A stretch of 64,000 nt of DNA from Klebsormidium nitens. Taxonomy: Eukaryota; Plantae; Klebsormidiophyceae. The first letter of the stretch is position 1; each line of letters starts with the position of its first letter. Shown in pieces: positions 1,889 through 50,100 of this stretch. Under the pieces are notes generated by a model. That model saw only the letters and a list, made by a program, of their open reading frames with translations. It searched no databases and was not told where the DNA came from. The position numbers and the translations under genes are program-made. The stretch covers positions 1 to 64,000 of the forward strand of contig DF237187.1 of assembly GCA_000708835.1 (NCBI GenBank). The letters are read 5' to 3'.

Positions 1889-4800
1889 ATGGCCTCCGCT
1901 TCAACATGCCTGAGGACGACAGCCCTGTCTCAGGTAGGCCACATCTCCGCTTCAAGGCCATCCAAGTCGGCGCTGAGTGCTGCTTTATGTTGGACGAGTG
2001 CTGCTTTCTGACAACAGTTAATAGCAAGATGCAATGCCTGTCAGCTTTGCAGCTTTGACCACTTCATTGCAGTTGGGAACATAGAAAATGAGGGTATGGA
2101 TATAGAATGCCGCATTGTGTGACCAGCTCAAAAATACGGTTCCTTTCTTCCTTACTGTGCTCGAATTTGAAGTGCTTCTGGACTCCAATAGATTCTGGAA
2201 AAGCATTATTAGTTCTGTCAATTATTCCTACCCGTGTAAGAATACGGTGGGATTATGTAGCGAGAGAGAATCACCAACTCGCACACTTAGTGTTTAGAGT
2301 TCGTTGTTGCAAGATGAGCAGGCCTACACAGCAATCTTGAGACAGCATGCTAGCGCCCCTGGAAAGTGAAGATAATTGTATCCGAGAGGCACATTGTGTC
2401 TAAAATTTGTCATCTGAAAACTGTTTTAAAGCAATGGCATGCTGTAGCTCTTGGTGATACCATACTCCTAGTCTTCTTCGCATCCTGTTGGATATTGCAG
2501 ATTAAGAATCACAGCAGAGAGCAACCATGGTAGCCTGCAAATTTAGAGAATGGGTCAGTGAAGTGAACACCTTTGGAACTCAGCAACGAAGCAGCCTCAT
2601 GGCATTGCTTACCGTAGATCCCAGGCTAGGGACAGCATCTCTTGGCGTCCGTATAGAAGGATGTGCCTTCTTGGCTGCTCCGAAGAGCAAGTCTGACTAT
2701 GTCTCTTCACTTGCAGGGCTTGGCTGCTGGTATGGGTGCTGAGAGGGAATGCACTGTGCAGAGGTAAGGAACGTGTGTCCTGCATGGAGGGTACCTGAAC
2801 TTTTTCTGTCAATCTGTTATGCCAAACTATTACCTTGACAGTAGTGCGCCTCTTTCCATCAAAGGCTGATGAAGGTCATCGTTGCCAGGAGGAACTTTCT
2901 GCAAGTGTGTCGAATGTGGTGCACATGCGGCAGCAAAAGATTGGAAGGAAAACTTCACACCAGGATCGCCTCATCTTGTCCTGCATTGGATCTGCAAAGA
3001 CATTGTTCTTAGAGCATGTTCCACGCTGCTGTGCAGGTCTGCATTCTTTGGCTCCCGGTCAGCCACCAATAATGCTCTTCGGCAAAAGGTGTCTGAAGGG
3101 CGCGCTCGCGTGACCTGCGAATCACAGAGGCCCTCGAGGAGCAGGTGGGCCTCTCTCAAGGAAGAGCCCAAGACACAAAAGCCCAAGACGGACAGATGGG
3201 GGGGCCTCGGCACCGACCAGTCAGACGATCAGCAGGACATCACCAGGGGCCGCGGGATGGTTGACTCTGTTTTCCAGGGCGCGAGCGGCCTCGGCGGAAC
3301 ACAGAATGCCATCATGAGCAGCCATGACTATATCAGCACCGCGCAGAAAACGTAAGGGACAGTCCCTACAGATGTGCATGCTGTGGCCCGCCTGAGAGCA
3401 ATGCTATGGTTTTTGCTTCCCGGTACTTGCGGATCCACTTCACCCTTCAAAACCATGATTTACAATCATTCTCCTCAATGCTCCATCTGCTCAAAATCTG
3501 ATTAAGACGTTGAAGACGTTTAAGCTGCAAAACAGGGATATGTGTGTGTTGTCAGCGAAGCAAGTGTACGATGCTCCGCTGTGTTTAGAGAAGCCAACTG
3601 GAGAATGAACGCTTATTACATCATCGACATCACTCTGCCGTGCAGTTTGAGCAACATCAGCGCTGAGGGTTACTACATCTCCCCCACCTTCATGGACAAG
3701 CTGGTGATCCACATCACAAAGAACTTCCTCAAGCTCCCCAACATCAAGGTGAGCACTGCAGCTGCGCTGCAAGCTTCACGCTTTTAGCATGATCGTTAGC
3801 TTGTCATCCACATTCAAGGAGGGGAATGTACATCGCAGTGCGCCAAGCCTGAGCACCCCTTCCATAGTCGAAGTTAGGGTTTCTTTGCATGAATGAAAAA
3901 CTGCCTGTGTTTTATGAAAGCATGCTGTCACAGTTTTTGCACCACTCACTCGTGCCAGTGTTGAAATTCATTGTGCTCTTCATAAGTGCAAGAGGCGCTC
4001 CATGAGTCCGGTTCTCAATTCCCAATTCTGCTGCTCTCCCTCGTGGCAGGTTCCTCTCATTCTCGGAGTGTGGGGTGGTAAGGGTCAGGGCAAGTCCTTC
4101 CAGGCTGAGCTGGTCTTCTCCATGTTGGGAATCAAGTAAGTGGATCAGCACAATTTCACGCTTGTGCTGAAGCAGTGATGCCTTGGTTGCATATTTCTGG
4201 CTAGAGACTGCCTTCATTTCTGACGTAATGTTGAAGCTGCTCTGAATGCATTTGAGGCAGAACGCTTCGCCAGCGAGTTCCTGATGCAGATTGTTTCACA
4301 GTTTGATGAGACTTGCACTTTCTGTAAGAAGAACTGCTCCGCTGATGTATCTGCTCTCAATGTAGAGGAGTTTCTGGTGGTAAAACTCTTAAGTTTTGAA
4401 TTAGGCGGGCTCATGTTGCTGCTCCACCCTGTTTTGCAGCCCCATTGTCATGTCTGCTGGAGAGCTGGAGTCTGGAAATGCCGGAGAGCCCGCCAAGCTT
4501 ATCAGGCAAAGGTACCGCGAGGCCTCTGACATCATCAAAAAGGGCAAGATGTGCGCCCTCTTCATCAACGATCTTGATGCGGGTAAGTTCTGTCCCGATT
4601 GTTTGAAGGACACTGAGGTTGCTGCATCTAAGCAAAGTGGCAAATGAGTCGGATCTTTCATTTCAAAGCCATTTCTGCATTCTCAAAACGTTCGAAAAGG
4701 TTGTCAACAGGCAGTCATACTTATTACAGCTATCGGCATTGCACTTATTCGTCTAAGCTTGAAACTCCGATCGAAGCGTTTGGATTCAGGCTGCTGTTGT

Positions 4801-7252
4801 CCGCCAGTAAGCCAGACTTTCCCAGCCCTTTCTTGTCCTCTTCCTTGTGGACATCTGAACAATGTGCCCTTCTAGTTCTGTTTCTATTGCAGCAGTGCAG
4901 CTCGCCCCTGCTACCAATTTGTGAACAGCAGGCGGCTCCATCGCAAATCAGTAACCCCAGAGGAATGCAGGAGACCTGACCCAACTTTTCAAATAGAGCT
5001 GACTGTTGTTTCTGAATTCAGGTGCGGGTCGCATGGGTGGCACCACCCAGTACACCGTCAACAACCAGATGGTGAACGCCACCCTCATGAACATTGCTGA
5101 TAACCCCACCAACGTCCAGCTGCCGGGTGTCTACAACAAGGAGGAGAACCCCCGCGTGCCCGTCATTGTGACTGGTGAGTGGTGCAAAATCCACACCCTG
5201 GGATCGCTCTAGCTCGCCTACCACTGGGTCCCTCCTTTACCATTTGTGCTGCTTGGCTGCTTCATATCGTTTGGAGGGGTTGCAAGCTTAGCCACTCCTA
5301 ATTTGGCAGCTTTTGCTCTGGCTTCTTACTTTGACAAGTTCGGATAGAGCATCCACTAAGCAATTCCTTAGGGACAAGGTATATTGCTTGAAGAGGGTTC
5401 TTGTTGTTTGTAACCAAGATGGGCTGGCATTCGCTGAACGACGCTCCAGTTCAGTTCCGCCGCCAGCACTGGTCAAAGATCACATTTTTCTGCCACATCA
5501 ACTAATGCAGTAAGCCTTGCAGCCTTCTCTATCGGGTCATTCGATACACACCCGTGCTTTTACTCCTCCCAAAGAGGCTTTCCTCCAATGCCATTGTCTT
5601 TGCGCCTCATGCCGTACCTCCCCTTGCAGGTAACGATTTCTCCACCCTGTATGCCCCCCTCATCCGTGATGGCCGTATGGAGAAGTTCTACTGGGCCCCC
5701 ACCCGTGAGGACCGGATCGGTGTGTGCACCGGTATCTTCAAGGAGGACAAGATCAACCTTGGCGACATCCAGACCCTGGTCGATGCCTTCCCTGGCCAGT
5801 CCATCGACTTCTTCGGCGCCCTGCGGTCTCGCGTTTACGACGACCTCGTCCGTGACTGGGTCAAGAACGTGAGCACTCGAGCTCTTTTCAACATCTCACT
5901 TGAGTGGCTCACAAGTGCCATACTTGTGTGCTAGTCATGGTTCCTGGTTGCTTGGGAGGATAAGCCGCTGAGGAAGAAAGTGGTGCAAAGTGCTGCTTGC
6001 CCGACCTCATCATTGTGCCTGACCTCGTGCAATTCTTTGCCAACAATATATACCAGCGCTTCTGCAAAACCGAAAATGCTGCTGTTCCTTCTTTCATCTC
6101 TGCTGGCTTCCGGCTCAAATCTGCACTCGCTGCTGTTCATTTATTCTCTCTTGTGGCTCAATTCTGCACTTGTTTTCATTTCATACGTGCCGGCCTCCCG
6201 CTCAAAATTGCCCTCGTTTCTGGCTCAACCGTGCTGGTTTCCCGCTCGTATTTGAACCTTCTCGGTACTGCTGAAGTAGTTCCGGCAGGGTGCGTCTCCA
6301 AGCAGGTGGTCAATTCAGCCTCAAGGGCCGAACAAAACTTCCCACCAGGACAAGTCGTTGCATCTGACCTCTGGACATTCTCCACTGCAGGTCGGCTACA
6401 CGAACCTAGGAAAGTCGCTGGTCAACTCCAAGAACGGCCCGCCCACGTTCGAGCAGCCCCGGATGACCCTCGATATCCTGCTTGCGTACGGCAACAAGCT
6501 GGTCGAGGAGCAGGAGAACGTCAAGCGGGTGCAGTTCGCCGAGGAGTACCTCTCCGGCGCTGCCCTGGGTGATGCCAATGCCGACGCCATCGCATCTGGC
6601 AGCTTCTACGGTGCGCCTCCTTGATCTGGTTGATTTTGAAAGTTCTAGTCCTAATGGAGATTGCCCCACTGAAGTCAACAGGAGGGTCGCTTGTCGTTTG
6701 CTCGTAAGAAGTGCCGGCAGCGAAACCCGTTCCTGACGAGCACGTCATGTTCACGGTGCGCAACTCTGTGGTTCAGTGGGTGTAGACTTGGTTCAATTTG
6801 TAATCGCCCTGAAGATTGGGGGTAAAAGTGCTACTAGGCCGAAAAGCTGCCCTTTGTTGGTGGCGCTTTTATTCTTCTTAACTGCTCCAAGGCTTGTTTC
6901 AACAAGCCAGGTCTCAAACCAGTCTGTCATGCGTTCCGTTTCCTCATCAACGGGGGCCAAGCAATGAACCTACGAGGCTGGGGGCAGCGATGCAACCGGT
7001 ATTAGCTCTAGCCCTTAAGTAGTTGGGGTTTTATTTAGGCTAACTTGGAATGAAAACGACGTTGAAGGATGCAGCCAGATCGAACTCTCTTCTAATGTTG
7101 GCGTCCGGGTTTTTGCAGCTGGAAAGGCAGCACAGCAGAACCCTCCTAAGGTGAAGGAGGGGTGCACGGACCCTATTAGCACGAACTTCGACCCCACAGC
7201 CAGGAGCGATGATGGCTCGTGTGAGTACGACTTTAACACCTGGCCCGCATAA
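1889..7252 (+). CDS. RCA: Rubisco activase (chloroplast AAA+), redox-type alpha isoform; 5' transit-peptide exons uncertain
   Basis: Phase-consistent exons 3037-3351, 3646-3748, 4050-4135, 4440-4582, 5022-5174, 5630-5868, 6391-6610, 7119-7252. Motifs: [29 protein letters not shown], Walker [68 protein letters not shown], and C-terminal [18 protein letters not shown]. Candidate first exon 1889-1933 (acc[21 protein letters not shown]|GT); how it joins the 3037 exon is unresolved. Confidence 0.95.
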
Positions 7253-8290
7253 GCCAGGTGATTCACTTGTTATCCCGTTGGTTTGGCGTCAGTTTCGGGA
7301 ACGGTACTGGTGTTGTAACGTTAGGTAGGGGAGTCGGTAACTACCCTGGCTGCAGTGCTGTTTTGCAGAGATCCCTCATAGGTTTCATCAGCTTTCTGGC
7401 GCTTCAGGAAACTTACGAGATTCTTTCTCAAGAGACATTCTGATGAAGGATCGTGGTATGGTGTTTTGGTATGATACGGAGTTCCAAACCTTGACTTTGA
7501 TGTCTCTGAAAGACTGGTTCTTTTGAAGAGAACCCTCATCCTCCAATGCGTGCATTCATGTACACATGGCCAAGGTTCTTGGTCAGGCTGATGTAAAACG
7601 TCTAGCTGTGGCAATGAAAGTTGCAAATCACCGCACATGTACCAGAACAACTTTAAAAGACAAAATTGGTGGTAAGTTTCCGATCGAACCCTCTTCTAAT
7701 ATCGCATTGGGGTTCTCTGCAGCTAAAAAGGCAGCGAAGCAGAATTCGACTTCAAAGCGCTCTGCAAAGGCAGTTCAGCCGAAGCCTGCTCCGGTGCCTG
7801 AGCAGAAGAAGGCTCCTGTGTCTGAGCCGGAGCCTGCTTCGTTCTTTGCGTCGGAGCCTGCTTCGTTCTTTGCATCGGAGCCTGCTCCGTCGTTCTTTGA
7901 GTCGGCGCCTGCTCCGGCTGCTTCGTTCTTTGAGGCGGCGCCTGCTCCGGCGGAGCCTCAGGGATGCACAGACCCTAAGGCCTCTAACTACGATCCCTTC
8001 GCCTCGAACGATGATGGCACTTGTGAGTACGACATGTCTACCTGGCCAGCATAAGCCAAAGCTTGAGTTGTTGTTGCGTTCGTTTGGTAACGATTCAAGT
8101 GTTTTAACATTACGGTAGGCAGGTTGGTGACTACCCTTGCTGCAATTCTGTTTTGAGGAATCTCTCCATTAGATTACCAGCTTTCCAGCGCTTCAGGACT
8201 ACCCGATGATCATGAGAACTATTGTCAATAGACATTTCGAAGGATGAAGATCGTCGTATGGTATACGTACGGGTTGCCAATCGTGAATGT
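7081..8290 (+). repeat. Degenerate tandem duplication of the RCA last intron end, terminal exon and 3' UTR (units about 7081-7520 and 7685-8290)
   Basis: Shared blocks: cgaac(t/c)ctcttctaat before both acceptors; acctggcc(c/a)gcataagcca at both stops; UTR blocks ggtagg..gt.ggt.actaccct.gctgca.t.ctgtttt and cagcttt...gcgcttcagga; atgaag(g)atcgt.gtatgg. Confidence 0.9.
7723..8054 (+). CDS. RCA: Second, alternative terminal exon of Rubisco activase (long Pro/Ala-rich SFF-repeat extension plus two-Cys motif)
   Basis: Acceptor TCTCTGCAG|CT at 7722/7723 has the same phase as the 7119 exon. Open to TAA at 8052-8054, encoding AKKAAKQNS...EPASFFAS..x4..QGCTDPKASNYDPFASNDDGTCEYDMSTWPA. Confidence 0.75.
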
Positions 8291-9374
8291 TAAGTGCACG
8301 CATACGTGTCATGACACTTCTTGAAGAAAACACTCATTGCTTGCATGCCTAATGGAAAGTATCGCGTGCTTTCATGTTAGTACATCTCGCCAATCCTGGC
8401 CGGCCAGGCTGGCACATGTGACACGTCTATTTATGCCACGGCATGCACGACTCGAAAATTGCAGATCACTGTCCCGGTCCATACGTGTTGCAATCGTAAT
8501 GCTGATTTAAAGTTCATTCACTGGCTATGCAGCAGGTTTAGTGTTGACCTCGAGCGAGAGTCTCTCGCCAATTACTGCCGCGTCTGATCGAGTGACCTCT
8601 AGGGCCTGATGCTGCACTACATGTGCCGGTTGTATGGAAAATGAATGGTGGTGCTCGACTGGATCGGATACGGTTATAAACGAGTGGCCTCTCTGGATCA
8701 CTGGCCCATGCCTTTGAATGATGGCACTTCCGACGCGATCAACCATGGTTTTGAGAATACCGGTACAACAACTCGGTCACAAGCACTGTAACATATAATC
8801 GAATGCAAGTCGAGTTCATGGACGTTAGTACGTCTATATACATGTACCTAATCAAAGTCATCAAGACCGAGTCCACTTCAAAGCGGCGGCCATGCAAATT
8901 TCAGATGTTTCGGTCACTGATAAGCACGCATGCCAAACAAGTGCGACGGGCCCAGCCACTGCGCATCCAAACGTAGTACTACTAGATAGACGGTAAGTAC
9001 ATGGCCGCGATTTAGAAGCACACTCACAATCCTGCGCATATCATGCATGTCATAAATACGCTCAAGAGTGGGAAGGCCCGGTCCCGTGCCGCGTATCCCG
9101 GCTTGGGGGCTAGTTTCACATGTGCACGTGTCTGCATAGGTACCACCTATGCAGTCATGATACTTAACCATAACCCGGTTAGCTTACTGAGGCCAATGCT
9201 CCGCAAAAGTTCAGAGGACACTTGAGTCACGGCGGACTTGATTGCAAGCCTTCACTTGACACTTTGTCGGGCAGCAGTTGACTCACGCACACATATGATG
9301 TCATCAGAAGCTTTGACCCGTTGACCCAACCGACCGGATCGGTCGATCTTTGTGGTCTTCAAAGCAGTAGGTCA

Positions 9375-23241: not shown

Positions 23242-26200
23242 CTAGGACCGCGGCTCTACCACCTGGCGGAAGGTGATGCTGACACGTCGCTCGCCCGCCA
23301 GGTCCGCGTTCTTGATGGAGTGCGTGAAGTTGTAGCGGCTGTCCTGAGTTTGCACCTGGCCAGGTTAATAACGTGGCTTAGTCTTTCGCCTGGGGTGCTT
23401 AACCTGGGGTGCTTAACCTGACAACTGCCGACGTGTCACCCAAAAAGCGACCCATCCGGCCTCCTGAATGGGCCCGCGTTGGTCGCCCCGCCAGTTGTAA
23501 CGGACATCCTTTTGTTCGCCCTGCAACACGTTGCGGTGATACACTTCGGCCATCGAACTAGGGGCGTCTGGGCTGATGCGTCAAGAATTGTAAACAACTC
23601 CATTGTTTGTTGGCAGAGAACGCACCGTTCAACACTGCCCTATGCTTTTCTCGAGACCTTTGAGCTTTCCCCACTTCACAAACTAGGGGGACCAAACCTC
23701 CAAGTACGATCTCCACAATGCTGCAAGACGGAAGGCCTTCAAAGCATGGCGCTCAGCTAGAATATCGGAGTGTATCGGAGTGTCATTAAAACAATATTAT
23801 CTGCTTCCGGAGCGTTCCTATGTCACAAAATGTCTCGCTCAACGTATCCGAGTTTCTTTTCCTCATTGAGCGACCATCCCTTCTTCATCGAGGAGGCTTC
23901 CAGCCCACCTGTAGATACCGCCTGCAAAGAAGCAAGTGTTTTCAAAGCACTTAATGGTTACGGCGAGTGTAGAAAAGTTGTTCAAGAGGAGGCTTGGTTG
24001 AAAACCCGTTCGCCAAATGAGAGAAATTTCAGCCCACCTGTAGGCACCGCCGGGGCAGGCGCACCCGGAACTTCTCGGGGCGGCCCCTCTCCCGCTCGTA
24101 CGTCATGACGCAATCCGAGTGCAGGCTGATGCCCGCAATGATGGTGCCTGACAACTGCAGGTGATCGTTATGCTTTTGCCAGAGTGCTATGATTATCCAT
24201 TTTTAATTACTTCAACGCTGCCTGAACTGGTACCGATGCATCCGTCGTTCCTGCTACAGCCGCTGTCGTTCGTTTGTGGAAAAGTCTGGCGGTATGTGAT
24301 CCGAGGATGTTAGAGTCAGGAAAGAAACGACGGGTTCTTACTGTAGACGGGGAGATGACGAATTTACAGAGACAGATTGCGTGGACGAAGCGCATGAAAG
24401 TGAAAACCCCGCCCCCCTTTCCGCCCCCCCTTCATTCATACGCAGCTTGCAGGAAGCAACCTTATGGCAATCCCGCATCGAAATAAGCTTTGCAACCCAA
24501 ACGTATGCTACGGCAGCCAATAGCTTCCAGATCAGCTCCACTTCGCACAAATCAAGCAGAAGGGGTTGTCGTAGCGTTCTCATACCTGTCGATCGTCGAC
24601 GTGGGGTCGCAACCAGTGACCGTCTTCCCGTCGATAGTTGATGGCGTTACACTCATTCGGAACAAAGTTGGACAAGGGCGGCGCGACCGTCCGAATGCGG
24701 TCCAACACGGACTGGAGGAACGGGGGCATCGGACGCTTCGGCTTCAAAATGGTCCTGCAAAAAGTGGAAGCTCTTCGATGATCAGGGACCTGAGGCCGCA
24801 ATCCAAAGGAGAGGGAGAAGCGAGCTAGGGTCGCAAGGGGGACCTGGGCACTTGGATTTGGCGATGGGGAGTTGAAAAAACTTCGTCCGATTGAATAACA
24901 GTTTTCTCCTTCGGACGTTGCGAGCCGACTCCAAGGTCAACTGGGGATGCATGAGGCATTCAACGACAACGTAATTCAGTTCCGATGAGTCTAAGGTAAG
25001 CTGCCCATGAGGAGACAGAACCGGAGCAGGATAAGCCCACTTTTGCAACGAGGCAGACACCGGCGAGCCGCTATTAAAAAGGGGGGCCGCCTTCCTAGCC
25101 CCTCTTCTTGTCTAGGCTCCTGGATGAATACAACTTCGAACCTTTCTATTACTGGAGGCAAAGTGAAGACGAGGTTAGCGAAATGGTCAAAAGCCTTTCC
25201 ACAGACAGACAAGAGCGACGAAGAATCTCTCGTAGCTAAAGCGCACCTCCTCCGGAGGTCCGTCACGAAGCCGTACGCTTTGCCCTCGTTCAGGTCCCCG
25301 AACGCCCGTGACGTCACCCACGGGTTGCTGACGTCAGCGTCCAGCGAGGCGAGGATGTGCGCCTCCTCCTGCGAACAAAGAGCGACGTTTCCGCACATAA
25401 CTTTCTTCTGGTCAATGGAACTCATTTGCATTTTCGTAGTCTGTCTCTAGAGGTCCGTACGTTGTCTCTGAAGTCTAGCTACCGGTTTGTTTCATTTAAG
25501 AAGGTCTTTCATTCCGCTTCATACGCTGGCCTCGTAAGAGCCTGGATTGTATAAAGTGGGCTGCTTTGGCCATGTCCGCTTGCACAGTCCAGCGCAGCGA
25601 ATTGCCAAAAATCACAAAAGGAAACCCAATGTGAGCCGTCGAATCCTCGCAAGTGAATGAGAATCTTGGTGGGACTAGGAATCTAAGGTCACTACTGACC
25701 GATCGTGTAGATCTATCGGTTCAAGGTCTCTACCGAAGACCATACGCATTCCGATCGTCGCATCCCAAAAAGCTCAGGGAGCATTCGCAGCGCCTTTGGC
25801 AGGCTTGGAATGCAAGAAATGCCAACAGAACAGACAAACAAAAGTAACCCCGCTACGCCTCTTCACCTGCTCCGTCAGAAAGTTCTCCACGAGATAGTGC
25901 CCCTTCGGAGCGCTCGGTTGCCGCGCCTGGATCGCCGCCCAGGAGAGGCCGAACAGCGGCCGCTGCCCCCGTTCACGCACCATCCCGAGCAGGGTGTGAA
26001 CGGGCTCCCTCCTCACAGGGCTAGGAGTGCGAACAGGCTCCTGGCCAGGGATGTGAACAAGCTCGTTGCTGTTGATGTGAACAGGCTCCCAACTGTTGGC
26101 CTGAACAGGTTCTTGTGTCACCTCCCGCTGACCCCTGCCGTTTTCGGGTGCCGTTGACACAACCGAAACGGCCCCGTACCTTGTGCCAGTCTGAACTTCC

Positions 26201-27945
26201 CCGAGAGTGTCAGGGCCCCCGATCTCGTTTGCAGTGCCTTGGCCTGTGTGAATACCCCCTGAGGCCCCCTGCTTTCCAAGCCTTTCTCTCCACGGCTCTT
26301 CACACTGGCGCTCTGAAGCTCCATAAGCAGCAGCGGCACTGTCAGTGTGAAAAGGGTCCCGTCCGTCAACATTTGCACCAGGGAGCCACTCATTCAGCGT
26401 CGGCATGACTTCGAACTCTCCTATGCTTTCTCTCAGCCTGGTTTCTCTAGCCCCGCACTGCTTCCCTCCCTTCATTCCGTCCCCCAATCCATACACACCC
26501 GCGCCGTTTGCTTCTGCCCCCTCTAGTTGGGCGCCTTGTTCCCGTCCAACCCGGCCCGTTTCACCGAAATTTGCGCTCGTGTTGAATGCCTCTTCATGAT
26601 AGGCCCCTCTGCAGTGTGCATCATCAGAAACCCCGGCGTCGAACCTGCATTCCGTCATTCTGCAGACTCCGGTGCTGATGTCAGCAGCGTCAGGAGCAGG
26701 CTTGTTCTGGTCAAAGTTCTGCTGGTTTGAAGTCCGGGCGGTTGCAGGGGTTGGGGCGATTGCAGCTTCGGGTATGGTTGCTGGGTTTGTGGCGCGTTGC
26801 ACGCAATCGAGGTCCAAATGGTGGTTCATTCTTGTGAGCGGTATTTGCACCTGCGATAACAAACAGTTTCCATAAGGGTGAAGTACATAATACTGGGAAG
26901 CCTTCGCGGAGCTCTGACACAAGAGGATACTTTTGAGCCGTTTGCTGCTGTTCAGGCTGTCCGTAAGTTTATGACACTTTGGAATTTCGTTGCCCTCCCT
27001 TCTTTGGATGCACGGTGGCTCCGCCATTAGAAGGAAAGGCAATGAATCGAACAGAAGGCAGACAGAATCCTTTTTGATGTAAGCACAGAGTCCTCTTCCA
27101 GGTTTGCACCCCAGCCAATTGAGCCTGATCACCCTATGGGTGCCGATTAGAATGATACCTGGTCCCCCTCAAAGGACACGAAAGTCAAGCATAACTCTGC
27201 AAAGAAGCAGCGGATCAACCAACAGCAATGGAAGCAGCGCCGCAAATAGATCGTTCGCACCAGTCTCTCTTTTCTGCATTACAGGTGCCGGTTCGGAAAC
27301 AGGGAGAAAGTTACAGATTTGGCGGAATGTTCTGCACTAGAGTCAGTCACCCGTCACAAACTTGACCGAGCTGCAAGCAAAAGCGAGCTTGTGGCTTACT
27401 GTGCAGAGTGGACATTGAGCATATGCGCTCCCATTCACCGCCCTCCCCAACGCTGCCCTTGCGGCCCTCGCCCTCTCCCCATCTTGCTCAACGCTACGCT
27501 CTCGCTGGTGCGCCACCTTACGCCGCTTGATGAACGCCTCAAGGGAGCCTTTGCTGGACGTCAACTGTCTGGGTTGTTCGCAGATGTCGATAGGGTCGTC
27601 AAAGTCAGCTTGCACCTCTTCAATCAGACTGGCGATGCCTGGCTGAAGAGAAGTTGATACCTGCTGCGCGACTGTCCCGCTTTGCAGAGGCGCTTCAACT
27701 CGCCAGCCCTCACTTGTCTTCAGATTTCGAGTCTCCACCTCTCCTCCTCTCTGCAGTTCCCAAAGTTTGCTCTGTTCCCCCCCGCCATTGCTTTTACTTT
27801 GCCCCTCAACATTCCCGCTGTTAAGTATAGCAAGTTCTGTGCTTGGCTGTCCTGACTTCCGCGATGCTTTCAATGCAGGCTGCAAGAATGCTGTGAGGCG
27901 GGGCTGCACTGTCGGCCTCGCGCGTTTCCTGTCAGGCCTCCTCAT
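23242..27945 (-). CDS. AlkB-family 2OG-Fe(II) dioxygenase with N-terminal PIP-like box and UBZ4 (Rad18-type) zinc finger, 6 exons, 683 aa
   Basis: Exons 27400-27945, 25867-26850, 25247-25368, 24586-24754, 24038-24154, 23242-23355 (phases consistent). Catalytic domain ENFLTEQEEAHILASLD...PNECNAINY...PHVDDRQLSGTIIAGISLHSDCVM...LPRRCLQ...SRYNFTHSI...RRVSITFR (HxD...H...RxxxxxR). CPLCT|VQIPLTRMNHHLDLDC spans exons 1-2. QPRLTAFL lies near the N-terminus. Confidence 0.88.
25975..26115 (-). repeat. Degenerate coding repeat (EPV-x motif) within AlkB-like exon 2
   Basis: QEPVQANSWEPVHINSNELVHIPGQEPVRTPSPVRREPVHTLLG; DNA shows repeated gtgaac(a/g)ggctc motifs on the + strand. Confidence 0.7.
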
Positions 27946-47166: not shown

Positions 47167-50100
47167 TCATCTCCGTGCGAGTTTCGAGAGTTTTGAATGT
47201 ATACTACCACGGGCTTTGCTTCGATCACTATGCCCCAACGCTTTCTTGCGTGTTGGAACATCACCAGCTTTGAGCTCAAGCGTTGTGCGGCTCTTCTTGG
47301 CTGCACGGAGAGAGCAAGACGCTTCAGCATGGTTGCAACTTGTTAGAGCTGAGAAAACCCGATACAAAGTTTGAGCCGCGCTTTATTGTCGACTCGCAAA
47401 GAGCATACTCGGAAGGAACATGTGATGGACTCCTGCCTTCACATCGTGGTTTCCAACTCAAAGCTGGTTTCTACAGCGCCGTAGATATGCTGCAGGTACG
47501 ATCTTTGCAGATGCCTGCTTGTCTCAGTGGCGAGCGACATCGATTCAAGATTCACAAATGCAGCTCACCATTCTCTGCCTGGAGGTACTTCTCGTGAAGG
47601 CGTCGCTTCGTCTCCTCGAGCTTGTTGGCCGGTTCCATCAGCAAGTCCCCCATCTGCCAAACGATGTATTACCATCAGGAGACTTAAAGCGTGTACGACT
47701 GCTCGCCAATGAAGCAATCAGATGGCAGGACAAACGTGGGGCCTCAGGAAATCTGGCTCTTCCTTCGAAGACGAGCACTAGGGGCAAGAAATGCAAGAGC
47801 CTCCCTTTGAGAATTCAACAAGCAATCAAACAATATTCAAGGGGTTCTTGAAGTGGCTTTACGGAAGCACGAACGTATAACGCACGAAGCAGGATGCTCT
47901 GTAGCTGGGCAGGCTTCACAATTCTATGAGGATCCGTGACAAGGATTGTCCGCAGCCCGGAACGTTCCAGCCACAGCAGTCCACACCCGGGCCAAACAAG
48001 ATTCATATTTCTGATCATAAGACCTTAAAATGAGTGAGCTTGACGCGATATGAGGCAGCAATTAATGTTCCTGACCTCCTCAGAGTCGCTGTCGCTCAAA
48101 AAGCCGTCCTCCTCCTCGAGCCCCGTCTCCGGCTCGGACCCGGAGTTCGAACCAACCGGGGTTCTGCTCTTGCCGACGTCAGCAGCCGAGGTGGCCCGCC
48201 TAGCAGGCGCGCCGTCGGGCGTTCGCACCGACTGTTTTCTAGCCCTCGGAAGCGGGTCCAACTCGTCGAACAGGTCGTCATCCGACGCCGATTCGAGTCC
48301 CGGCGTTTTCTTTGGCTTTCCTACGGCTGGCTTTCGAGCTTCCGAGACCCCTCCCGCATGGAAGTGTCTCTCCCGCCCTTTCTCCCCGTTCGCGTGGTTC
48401 GCCTGGGACCCGACAACCGGTTGCTCGACCCCGCTCTGTTGTTTTGGTGGGGGGTCGCGCATCTCCGGGTTTCTTCGGGGGGGCGCCGTCGCCCGCTTTG
48501 CCGTATCGTTGAACTGCAGAAAGTTGTTCGCGCTGTGCGGCTTGGGAAGGGGCTTCTGGCCATCCGCCGAGTGCGACACGGGTCGCACGGGCGTCCGAAC
48601 CGGGCTGAGACTGGGACGGCCCAATTTCACGGGCAGCTCCGGCGTTCCACTGCGAGGCCGTTCGCCCGGCTTGCCCGGTTGCCTGCCACCCAACTGCGAG
48701 CCCGGTGCTCCTGTCGCTTGTACAACGCCTGGTGGCTTACTACTCGAAGCCCGGGCAGGGTTCGAACCGTGTCCCGAGCTCTGCACGGCTGCCTCGGGGG
48801 TCTTACTCCGGGCCCTGTCTTGGCCCAATCTCAAATCCCCGCTTGCTTTCGAAGAGCTCCCGGGCGGCTGAGCAGACGGAGCCCCTCGCTCCGACGCGCT
48901 CTTGACGTCCGCCTTCGCTCCGGTGCCCAAGCTTTCCGTCCTATGCCCATCAGGCCCGGACCCTTCTCCCACGCGCGCTTTCTTCGCTGGCCCTTCCCCC
49001 TCACCAAAAACATCAGTTTCTTTTAAACTGCGCGCCCGCTTCGGCGTGTCCCCCGACGCCACGACACCACTGCTTCGTTCCGACCTTTCTCCCGCACTCT
49101 CTTTCTTTTCTACTTCGGCGCTTACGAAGTCGCCCCTCCCCAAAGATTGACCCCTCAATCCACCGCCCCCCTCGGGAACGCCATTAAGCTTGGCTGCCTG
49201 TTGCCACTTCTCCGCAGCAGCCTTTTCCCGTGTTTCCTTGTCAGTAGACACTCCGCTCGGTTCGGAAGCAGCAGAGGCAGGGTTGGTCGCAGCTTCAAAA
49301 TCGCTGTCGCGAGAGGCAGGAGGCCGGGGGTCATATACCGGGCTAAGGAAGGCCAGCCTACTGTTCACCGGGGCAGAGCCGGGGGTTACGGTGGAAGAGA
49401 GCTTTTCCAAACCGGCCGCTGCAGCAGACAAACGTGCGTCAATTCTCGACCAGCAACGCTGTCCAACGCTTTGTGTAGTGTCTGAGTTGGTCAACTTGCA
49501 GGTCCAGCTGAGCTGGCTCCGCCAGACCACGGCCAGTTCTCACAATTAAGGGAGAGTTTCAAAAGGGGGTAGGAAGGAGAATGACAAGCAGGACAATCTT
49601 GTGAACAAACCGGCACTTGCTACCAGAAGAAAACTTGAGAGAGTGGAAGGACAGAAAACAATCGGAAGTCAAGGTGCATATTTAAGCGCCTGCTCCTATT
49701 ACGGCTGTCCCCTCGAGTGGAACCGATTAGACCATTCCGACAAGGTTCGTGCAGCAACGTAGTGTTTTGTTACAAGCGAATCTTCTTGACCGTCACCGCT
49801 TCTATGATCCGTGATGACAGCAACATTGCTGGGGTTGAGTTCGCACGCAGAGCAATCAAACAACTGAGACTTTCTGCTTAAAGCTAGCCAGGTTCGTTTA
49901 GGATAACATAAGCGCTCTTCAGCCAAGCGCAAAAGGACAAAGGGATTCAACAAAGGGGGTCCCGACAATTTCGCAAGAAGGACATGTTCAGTGCGACTGG
50001 CGAACTTACCGAGGTCCTCTGCAGTGAAGTCCTCTAGCAGCTGAGACAACTCAGCAGACGTATTTCTAGAAGCGAGAGTGGCCGCATCCAGAGGGGGGGC

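Follow-up and report, generated by a model that had tools for sequence, protein, structure and literature searches.

A duplicated terminal exon and a donor site on a cysteine codon give an abundant long Rubisco activase mRNA with an SFF-repeat insert in Klebsormidium nitens

Does a cluster of Ser-Phe-Phe (SFF) repeats near the C-terminus of Rubisco activase bring this enzyme into the pyrenoid, or does it serve the enzyme itself? The question is raised by a locus of the charophyte alga Klebsormidium nitens, in a stretch of 64,000 nucleotides (contig DF237187.1, positions 1 to 64,000 of the forward strand) that we refer to as the window. A preliminary description of this DNA likened the repeat-bearing tail to pyrenoid linkers such as EPYC1, and proposed that it could target activase to a pyrenoid matrix or help to scaffold one. 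Activase isoforms and the redox C-terminal extension (CTE) are central to the response of photosynthesis to light, and the alga has a different solution here: a duplicated terminal exon, a donor site on the codon of a regulatory cysteine and a complete CTE in both isoforms. The locus further offers a concrete system in which the effects of a long tether, or of a tail both aromatic and acidic, on how activase is regulated, assembled or partitioned into the pyrenoid could be tested cheaply, in a lineage that is nearer to the crops than Chlamydomonas. We have high confidence that the terminal exon is duplicated, that the Cys-codon donor is used, that the long mRNA is abundant and that its charge-diblock insert contains a young in-frame SFF minisatellite.

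The Rubisco activase gene lies on the + strand, from about 3037 to 8290 of the window, with additional 5' exons upstream of 3037 and thus beyond the mapped range. RNA contigs from four runs of four studies (X1, X5, X9 and X11) were aligned to positions 3000-8400. Across the four runs, all of them clearly RNA, nine GT..AG joints are found at high depth. Two common exons match the Rubisco activase AAA helical domain (Pfam: PF21228), at 5632-5868 with E 7e-23 and at 6391-6609 with E 7e-9, and both the Walker A motif GGKGQGKS (exon 4050-4135) and the Trp motif of the N-domain can be read directly in the common exons. The gene is a green-type Rubisco activase of the AAA+ type, expressed and correctly spliced. 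The features of the locus are collected in Table 1.

Table 1. Positions in the window of the activase exons, splice sites and tail segments discussed in the text.
Feature	Position	Strand	Details
Common coding exons	3037-3351, 3646-3748, 4050-4135, 4440-4582, 5022-5174, 5630-5868, 6391-6610	+	GT..AG joints, RNA contigs, four runs
Terminal exon A	7119-7252	+	44 residues; short hinge and redox CTE module; joint 6610->7119 in 4/4 runs
Exon A CTE module	7160-7249	+	alpha-type, C-x18-C
Alternative 5' splice site GTGAGT in exon A	7221-7226 (cut 7220/7221)	+	joint 7220->7723, GT..AG, no ambiguous letters
Exon A stop TAA	7250-7252	+	translation
Minor 3' UTR intron of the short isoform	7258-7722	+	joint 7254->7720 (cut +3) = 7257->7723; depth 111/254/163/0
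Terminal exon B	7723-8054	+	110 residues; stop 8052-8054; RNA contigs cover 7723-8287
Exon B insert, basic block	7725-7823	+	exon-B residues 1-33, net charge +8
Exon B insert, acidic Pro/Ala/Glu block	7824-7958	+	residues 34-78, net charge -7
Second, complete CTE module	7962-8051	+	C-x18-C, then EYDMSTWPA
Exon B 3' UTR	end at about 8262-8287	+	RNA contigs

Some introns are also covered by contigs of low depth (4555-4962, 6581-7147 and 7228-7749; depth 4-83 vs 400-2800 in the exons), which suggests retained-intron or pre-mRNA reads of a highly expressed gene. In the transit-peptide region (3038-3060) the sequence SAFFGSRS contains another Ser/Ala-Phe-Phe. As activase transit peptides typically look like this, the resemblance to SFF is probably a coincidence.

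The two terminal exons are clearly related. Units A and B can be aligned across the flank of the upstream intron, the start of the exon, the C-terminal module and, for several hundred bases, the 3' UTR, with 75-77% identity in the non-coding parts and 74% at the nucleotide level in the module. Between the two modules 21 of the 31 positions are identical (30 residues and the stop codon) and dN/dS is about 0.45; what module B retains are the residues that the module family as a whole conserves. Exon B is a tandem duplicate of exon A plus an insertion of about 70 residues. This insertion is located between the conserved start of the exon (KAAxQN) and the module, where A has six residues and B about 70. 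The ends of the two units can be compared as well. TGTAA, the polyadenylation signal of chlorophyte algae, is found at 7314-7318 in the 3' UTR of exon A, just before the RNA depth falls (about 7343), while the aligned place after exon B (about 8106-8114) reads TGTTTTAA and the exon B messages continue to about 8262-8287.

How are the two exons used? In the preliminary description they were taken to be simple alternatives, and this has to be revised: exon B is spliced onto an internal donor within exon A (7220->7723). The joint from the common part to exon A (6610->7119) is present at full gene depth in 4/4 runs, while a direct 6610->7723 joint is absent from the contigs of the four runs, so that mutually exclusive use of A and B was rejected; a form that skips exon A directly would be minor at most. 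The 7220->7723 joint has a depth of 1460/628/633/418 vs 2779/1129/1585/957 for the upstream joint (X1/X5/X9/X11), which amounts to roughly 40-55%. The abundance of the long mRNA has the same order as that of the short one; the claim goes no further than this because contig depths are a rough measure of abundance and contigs drop rare variants. An assembly artefact at this joint was rejected, as the two sides have no sequence in common, the joint has canonical ends and all four studies contain it. The preliminary description had made its proposal depend on the expression of the exon-B isoform, and exon B is indeed present in spliced, high-depth RNA contigs from all four studies.

The internal donor is made by the Cys-Glu codons TGT GAG T, exactly at the codon of the second regulatory Cys. 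Its use deletes this Cys and the 10 residues with which exon A ends, and the reading frame is kept, with phase 1 on both sides of the joint as worked out by hand. The identical TGT GAG T in exon B (8021-8027) gave no joint in the four RNA runs. In total, the RNA data contain three mRNA forms that correspond to two predicted proteins. The predicted short protein consists of the common part and the whole of exon A, and the predicted long protein of the common part, residues 1-34 of exon A, a junction Ser and the whole of exon B. The long tail would thus comprise about 145 residues: the stump of the first CTE with one orphan Cys, the +8 block, the -7 SFF block and the complete CTE of exon B. Since both isoforms end in a complete CTE, the insert, together with the orphan Cys, is the main difference made by the alternative splicing.

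The third mRNA form uses the minor intron, with a donor 6 nt past the stop codon of exon A and an acceptor in common with exon B; through this intron exon B with its SFF repeats becomes the 3' UTR of a short-isoform message. An ORF on the minus strand (7723-7875) was dismissed because all joints are GT..AG on the + strand.

Both modules have the C-x18-C spacing. Over 88% of its length, exon A has 76% identity with the terminal exons of two small products (P0151 and P0152) on AT-rich (36% GC) genomic contigs (L010-L012), presumably from land plants. These exons share the final motif of exon A, and the intron position at which they start is almost that of exon A. The contigs have one terminal exon each, with Cys-Leu at the place of the donor and no internal donor. 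We take the sequence of the two products to be the land-plant alpha isoform's C-terminal extension. By this likeness exon A is the redox CTE of the land-plant alpha isoform, and both copies are predicted to encode such a CTE. The same 18-residue spacing separates Cys451 and Cys470 of the Arabidopsis activase (PMC12596110). According to PMC4436894 and PMC12596110, the plant CTE contains a disulfide, regulated by thioredoxin-f, that raises the sensitivity to ADP, and the oxidised CTE of the alpha isoform inhibits by occupying the nucleotide-binding site. PMC9951593 and PMC12596110 cite Nagarajan and Gill 2018 for tracing the CTE and its alternative splicing to the charophytes.

The CTE module (GCTDP..N[YF]DP.A..DDGSC.Y) is part of a very large family of Cys-bounded repeats of about 25 residues. 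A HMMER search of a protein library with exon B returned 5,935 proteins at E<=0.001. The best 150 of these (P0001-P0150) are long proteins that share only the module, in 7-54 tandem copies, and among them there is no activase and no comparable SFF array. A metagenome scan added nine loci (L001-L009) on marine or other contigs, again with the module only. Some proteins with the Cys-bounded repeat end in a type IX secretion sorting domain (Pfam: PF18962). The repeat itself has no Pfam model, and it has a marginal match (E 0.058) in solved chains of MPEG1/perforin-2 (6u2j, residues 331-355).

Searches for relatives of the insert gave nothing. Neither terminal exon is matched by a Pfam family at E <= 1. 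In a word-indexed search of proteins of 60-190 residues, the whole of exon B found Pro/Ala-rich candidates, none of which scored, and exon-B residues 66-109 found no candidate. Neither exon B nor the 162-residue ORF had an exact record, and the PDB and the ESM Atlas contained nothing usable for the insert. These searches used single exons, with full-length activases of related algae outside their coverage, and within them no homologous SFF array was found. The literature searched describes neither an SFF-bearing isoform nor a pyrenoid linker of Klebsormidium.

The repeats themselves are as first reported. Translation of 7725-8054 gave an exact match to the peptide quoted in the preliminary description, with four SFF in a Pro/Ala/Glu-rich stretch, and the translation of exon A (7121-7252) contains none, in agreement with their reported absence from that exon. 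The four in-frame SFF are located at 7839-7847, 7863-7871, 7890-7898 and 7923-7931, i.e., exon-B residues 39, 47, 56 and 67, with spacings of 8, 9 and 11 residues. Their proposed origin in tandem DNA repeats is borne out by Tandem Repeats Finder, which finds 3.5 copies of a 24-nt period at 7828-7913, with matches of 88%, and by the SFF codons TCG TTC TTT, identical in 4/4 copies. The program also gives a 33-nt reading of the same array (7858-7951) and a more degenerate, older 24-nt periodicity directly upstream (7777-7838). The in-frame repeat units measure 24, 24, 27, 33 and 21 nt (7830-7958), each a whole number of codons.

Between the SFF units the likeness is 88-100%, between exons A and B only about 75%. 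Because the copies are nearly identical in DNA at this distance between the exons, the array appears young: the SFF layer is, by this comparison, much younger than the exon duplication, or it is being homogenised. Four SFF were obtained in 0/100,000 composition-preserving shuffles of the 45-residue block, but the copies are products of duplication and not independent events, so this test gauges tandem duplication and not selection. PVPE, the hinge that precedes the module in plants (P0151), is still legible in the oldest part of the insert. We suggest that the insert could have grown by repeated in-frame tandem duplication of this Pro-rich hinge, and that the SFF units would be its youngest layer.

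The acidic block (residues 34-78) has 10 Pro and 13 Ala and no Lys or Arg. Each SFF unit is bracketed by prolines, with at most 6-7 residues between prolines. An AlphaFold2 single-sequence model has a mean pLDDT of 57 and no secondary structure in the insert, which is consistent with disorder, although such a model is weak evidence.

Several features of this tail can be set against the known systems for gathering Rubisco. In EPYC1 and CsLinker helical stickers are about 52 and about 48 residues apart (PMC13655443). In SUPA1 of Ulva a Tyr and a pair of basic clusters lie in a segment that becomes folded when it binds acidic patches of Rubisco (bioRxiv 10.64898/2026.07.16.738900), and the sticker of the diatom protein PYCO1 is KWSPRGGS. 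Aromatic residues are essential in several of the known Rubisco stickers, as for Tyr170 of SUPA1 and the Trp of PYCO1. The SFF block resembles these stickers in being repeated, aromatic and likely disordered. However, with 8-11 residues between its SFF, in place of 52 or 48, it does not have the long spacers with which EPYC1 and CsLinker bridge holoenzymes, and its units are only four and are carried by an enzyme. Spacing is not decisive by itself: a pyrenoid protein of chlorarachniophytes has 5-residue repeats 2-23 residues apart and was proposed to be a sticker array, and thus short spacing alone is no bar to Rubisco binding. The known stickers of the green lineage are basic, and helical or folding on binding, while the SFF units are acidic (-7) and bracketed by prolines and have no predicted helix. 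The proline brackets would not allow a helix of the EPYC1, CsLinker or SUPA1 type.

Proteins of Chlamydomonas that bind Rubisco reportedly do so by the motif Trp-Arg/Lys-x-x-aliphatic (Meyer et al. 2020). The insert has no Trp and therefore lacks this motif. The architecture has parallels elsewhere. A cyanobacterial activase-like protein carries a C-terminal Rubisco-binding SSUL domain, which is reported to give multivalent Rubisco binding and to recruit the activase to the CO2-fixing compartment (Flecken et al. 2020). The likeness lies in an activase hexamer with a C-terminal appendage on a flexible linker; however, SSUL is a folded RbcS-like domain, while exon B has no Pfam domain. RbcS-STAR of hornworts is another C-terminal extension on a Rubisco-related protein of a streptophyte, without a separate linker, and drives condensation. 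It works by coiled-coil helices on RbcS, unlike the tail described here, which sits on activase and has no predicted helix. The system can also be compared with the alpha and beta activases of land plants, the same protein with the same CTE, in which an alternative donor near the C-terminus also gives two abundant isoforms. In land plants, however, the short form lacks the CTE, while in Klebsormidium nitens both forms end in a complete one, and the long form comes from a duplicated terminal exon that adds the stump of the first CTE and a charge-diblock insert of about 70 residues with its four SFF.

In Chlamydomonas, the N-domain of activase alone is enough for partitioning into the pyrenoid and into EPYC1-Rubisco condensates, and single substitutions in this domain abolish the partitioning (PMC13172511). 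The Chlamydomonas activase makes salt-sensitive multivalent contacts with Rubisco and with the basic EPYC1, and it raises the viscosity of the condensate (PMC13172511).

In our view the insert would serve as a disordered tether with segregated charges, which sets the redox lid at a good distance from the AAA+ ring. The four close SFF units could together make at most one weak, fuzzy acidic-aromatic sticker. Rather than cross-linking Rubisco holoenzymes in the manner of EPYC1-type linkers, they would more probably tune the regulation or self-association of activase, or interact with a basic partner. A mainly disordered tether, with one weak composite sticker at the most, that tunes activase regulation or assembly is a tentative reading, and we place it a little short of an even chance. 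The youth of the array does not exclude a function, and the abundance of an isoform set apart mainly by its insert points to a specific role of the insert, which speaks against a mere tether. What this may be can be looked for in two directions. The SFF cluster could be a signal for partitioning into the pyrenoid or for co-scaffolding, in which up to six tails per hexamer bind Rubisco or a basic linker, and so enrich the long isoform or stiffen the matrix. We consider this possible but rather unlikely. The mRNA of the long isoform is abundant in four studies, the motif is repeated and aromatic in a likely disordered tail, aromatic residues matter in the stickers of SUPA1 and PYCO1, and no pyrenoid linker is described for Klebsormidium in the literature searched; the Rubisco-binding appendage that cyanobacterial activase-like proteins are reported to carry, and the contacts of the Chlamydomonas activase with both Rubisco and EPYC1, point the same way. 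However, SFF units 8-11 residues apart cannot bridge separate holoenzymes, they are non-helical between their prolines, and their charge is opposite to that of all characterised green-lineage stickers. There is no other SFF cluster in the window and none among the best 150 library matches. Together with the youth of the array and the partitioning that the N-domain already provides in Chlamydomonas, the spacing, proline brackets and charge argue against a classical EPYC1-like linker. With their acidic charge, the SFF units would find a more plausible partner in a basic linker than in the acidic patches of Rubisco. In a more specific form, the array would be a new client or co-scaffold signal of the pyrenoid that binds a basic linker or Rubisco by cation-pi and electrostatic contacts, and splicing at the Cys codon would set how much activase and cross-linking enters the matrix; this we hold to be doubtful. 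On the whole, a pyrenoid function of the SFF tail seems unlikely.

The other direction leads back to the enzyme. The acidic-aromatic units might dock on activase itself, at the nucleotide pocket, the N-domain, the pore or their own basic block, and the docking and the orphan Cys would then alter ADP or redox sensitivity or the assembly of the hexamer. The oxidised plant CTE, which acts at the nucleotide-binding site, is a precedent for a tail of this kind. The +8 and -7 blocks are complementary, and the splice deletes the very Cys of copy A that is the second of the regulatory pair, and supplies a new, complete CTE. Yet the donor on the Cys codon may have arisen by chance from the codons TGT GAG T, which are present but unused in copy B, and we regard such autoregulation as quite improbable. 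Finally, the long mRNA could be a tolerated by-product of the exon duplication that gives hardly any stable protein or none, and the SFF array the result of neutral replication slippage. The long isoform is known as RNA, and its young array is without detectable homologues in the searches made. This explanation has to contend with the great abundance of the 7220->7723 joint in four independent studies, with a frame that is intact through five repeat units and with a downstream module kept at the positions conserved in its family; further, nonsense-mediated decay is not expected of a message with its stop codon in the last exon. A mere by-product therefore seems to us very unlikely. The tether that tunes activase is the reading we favour, and if the tail were only a young spacer, the locus would still be a tidy example of how exon duplication and the growth of a minisatellite lead to a new abundant isoform.

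Elsewhere in the window, the two longest ORFs are both on the - strand, at 48025-49530 (501 codons) and 25774-27132 (452 codons), and the former lies in a G+C-rich stretch (0.59).
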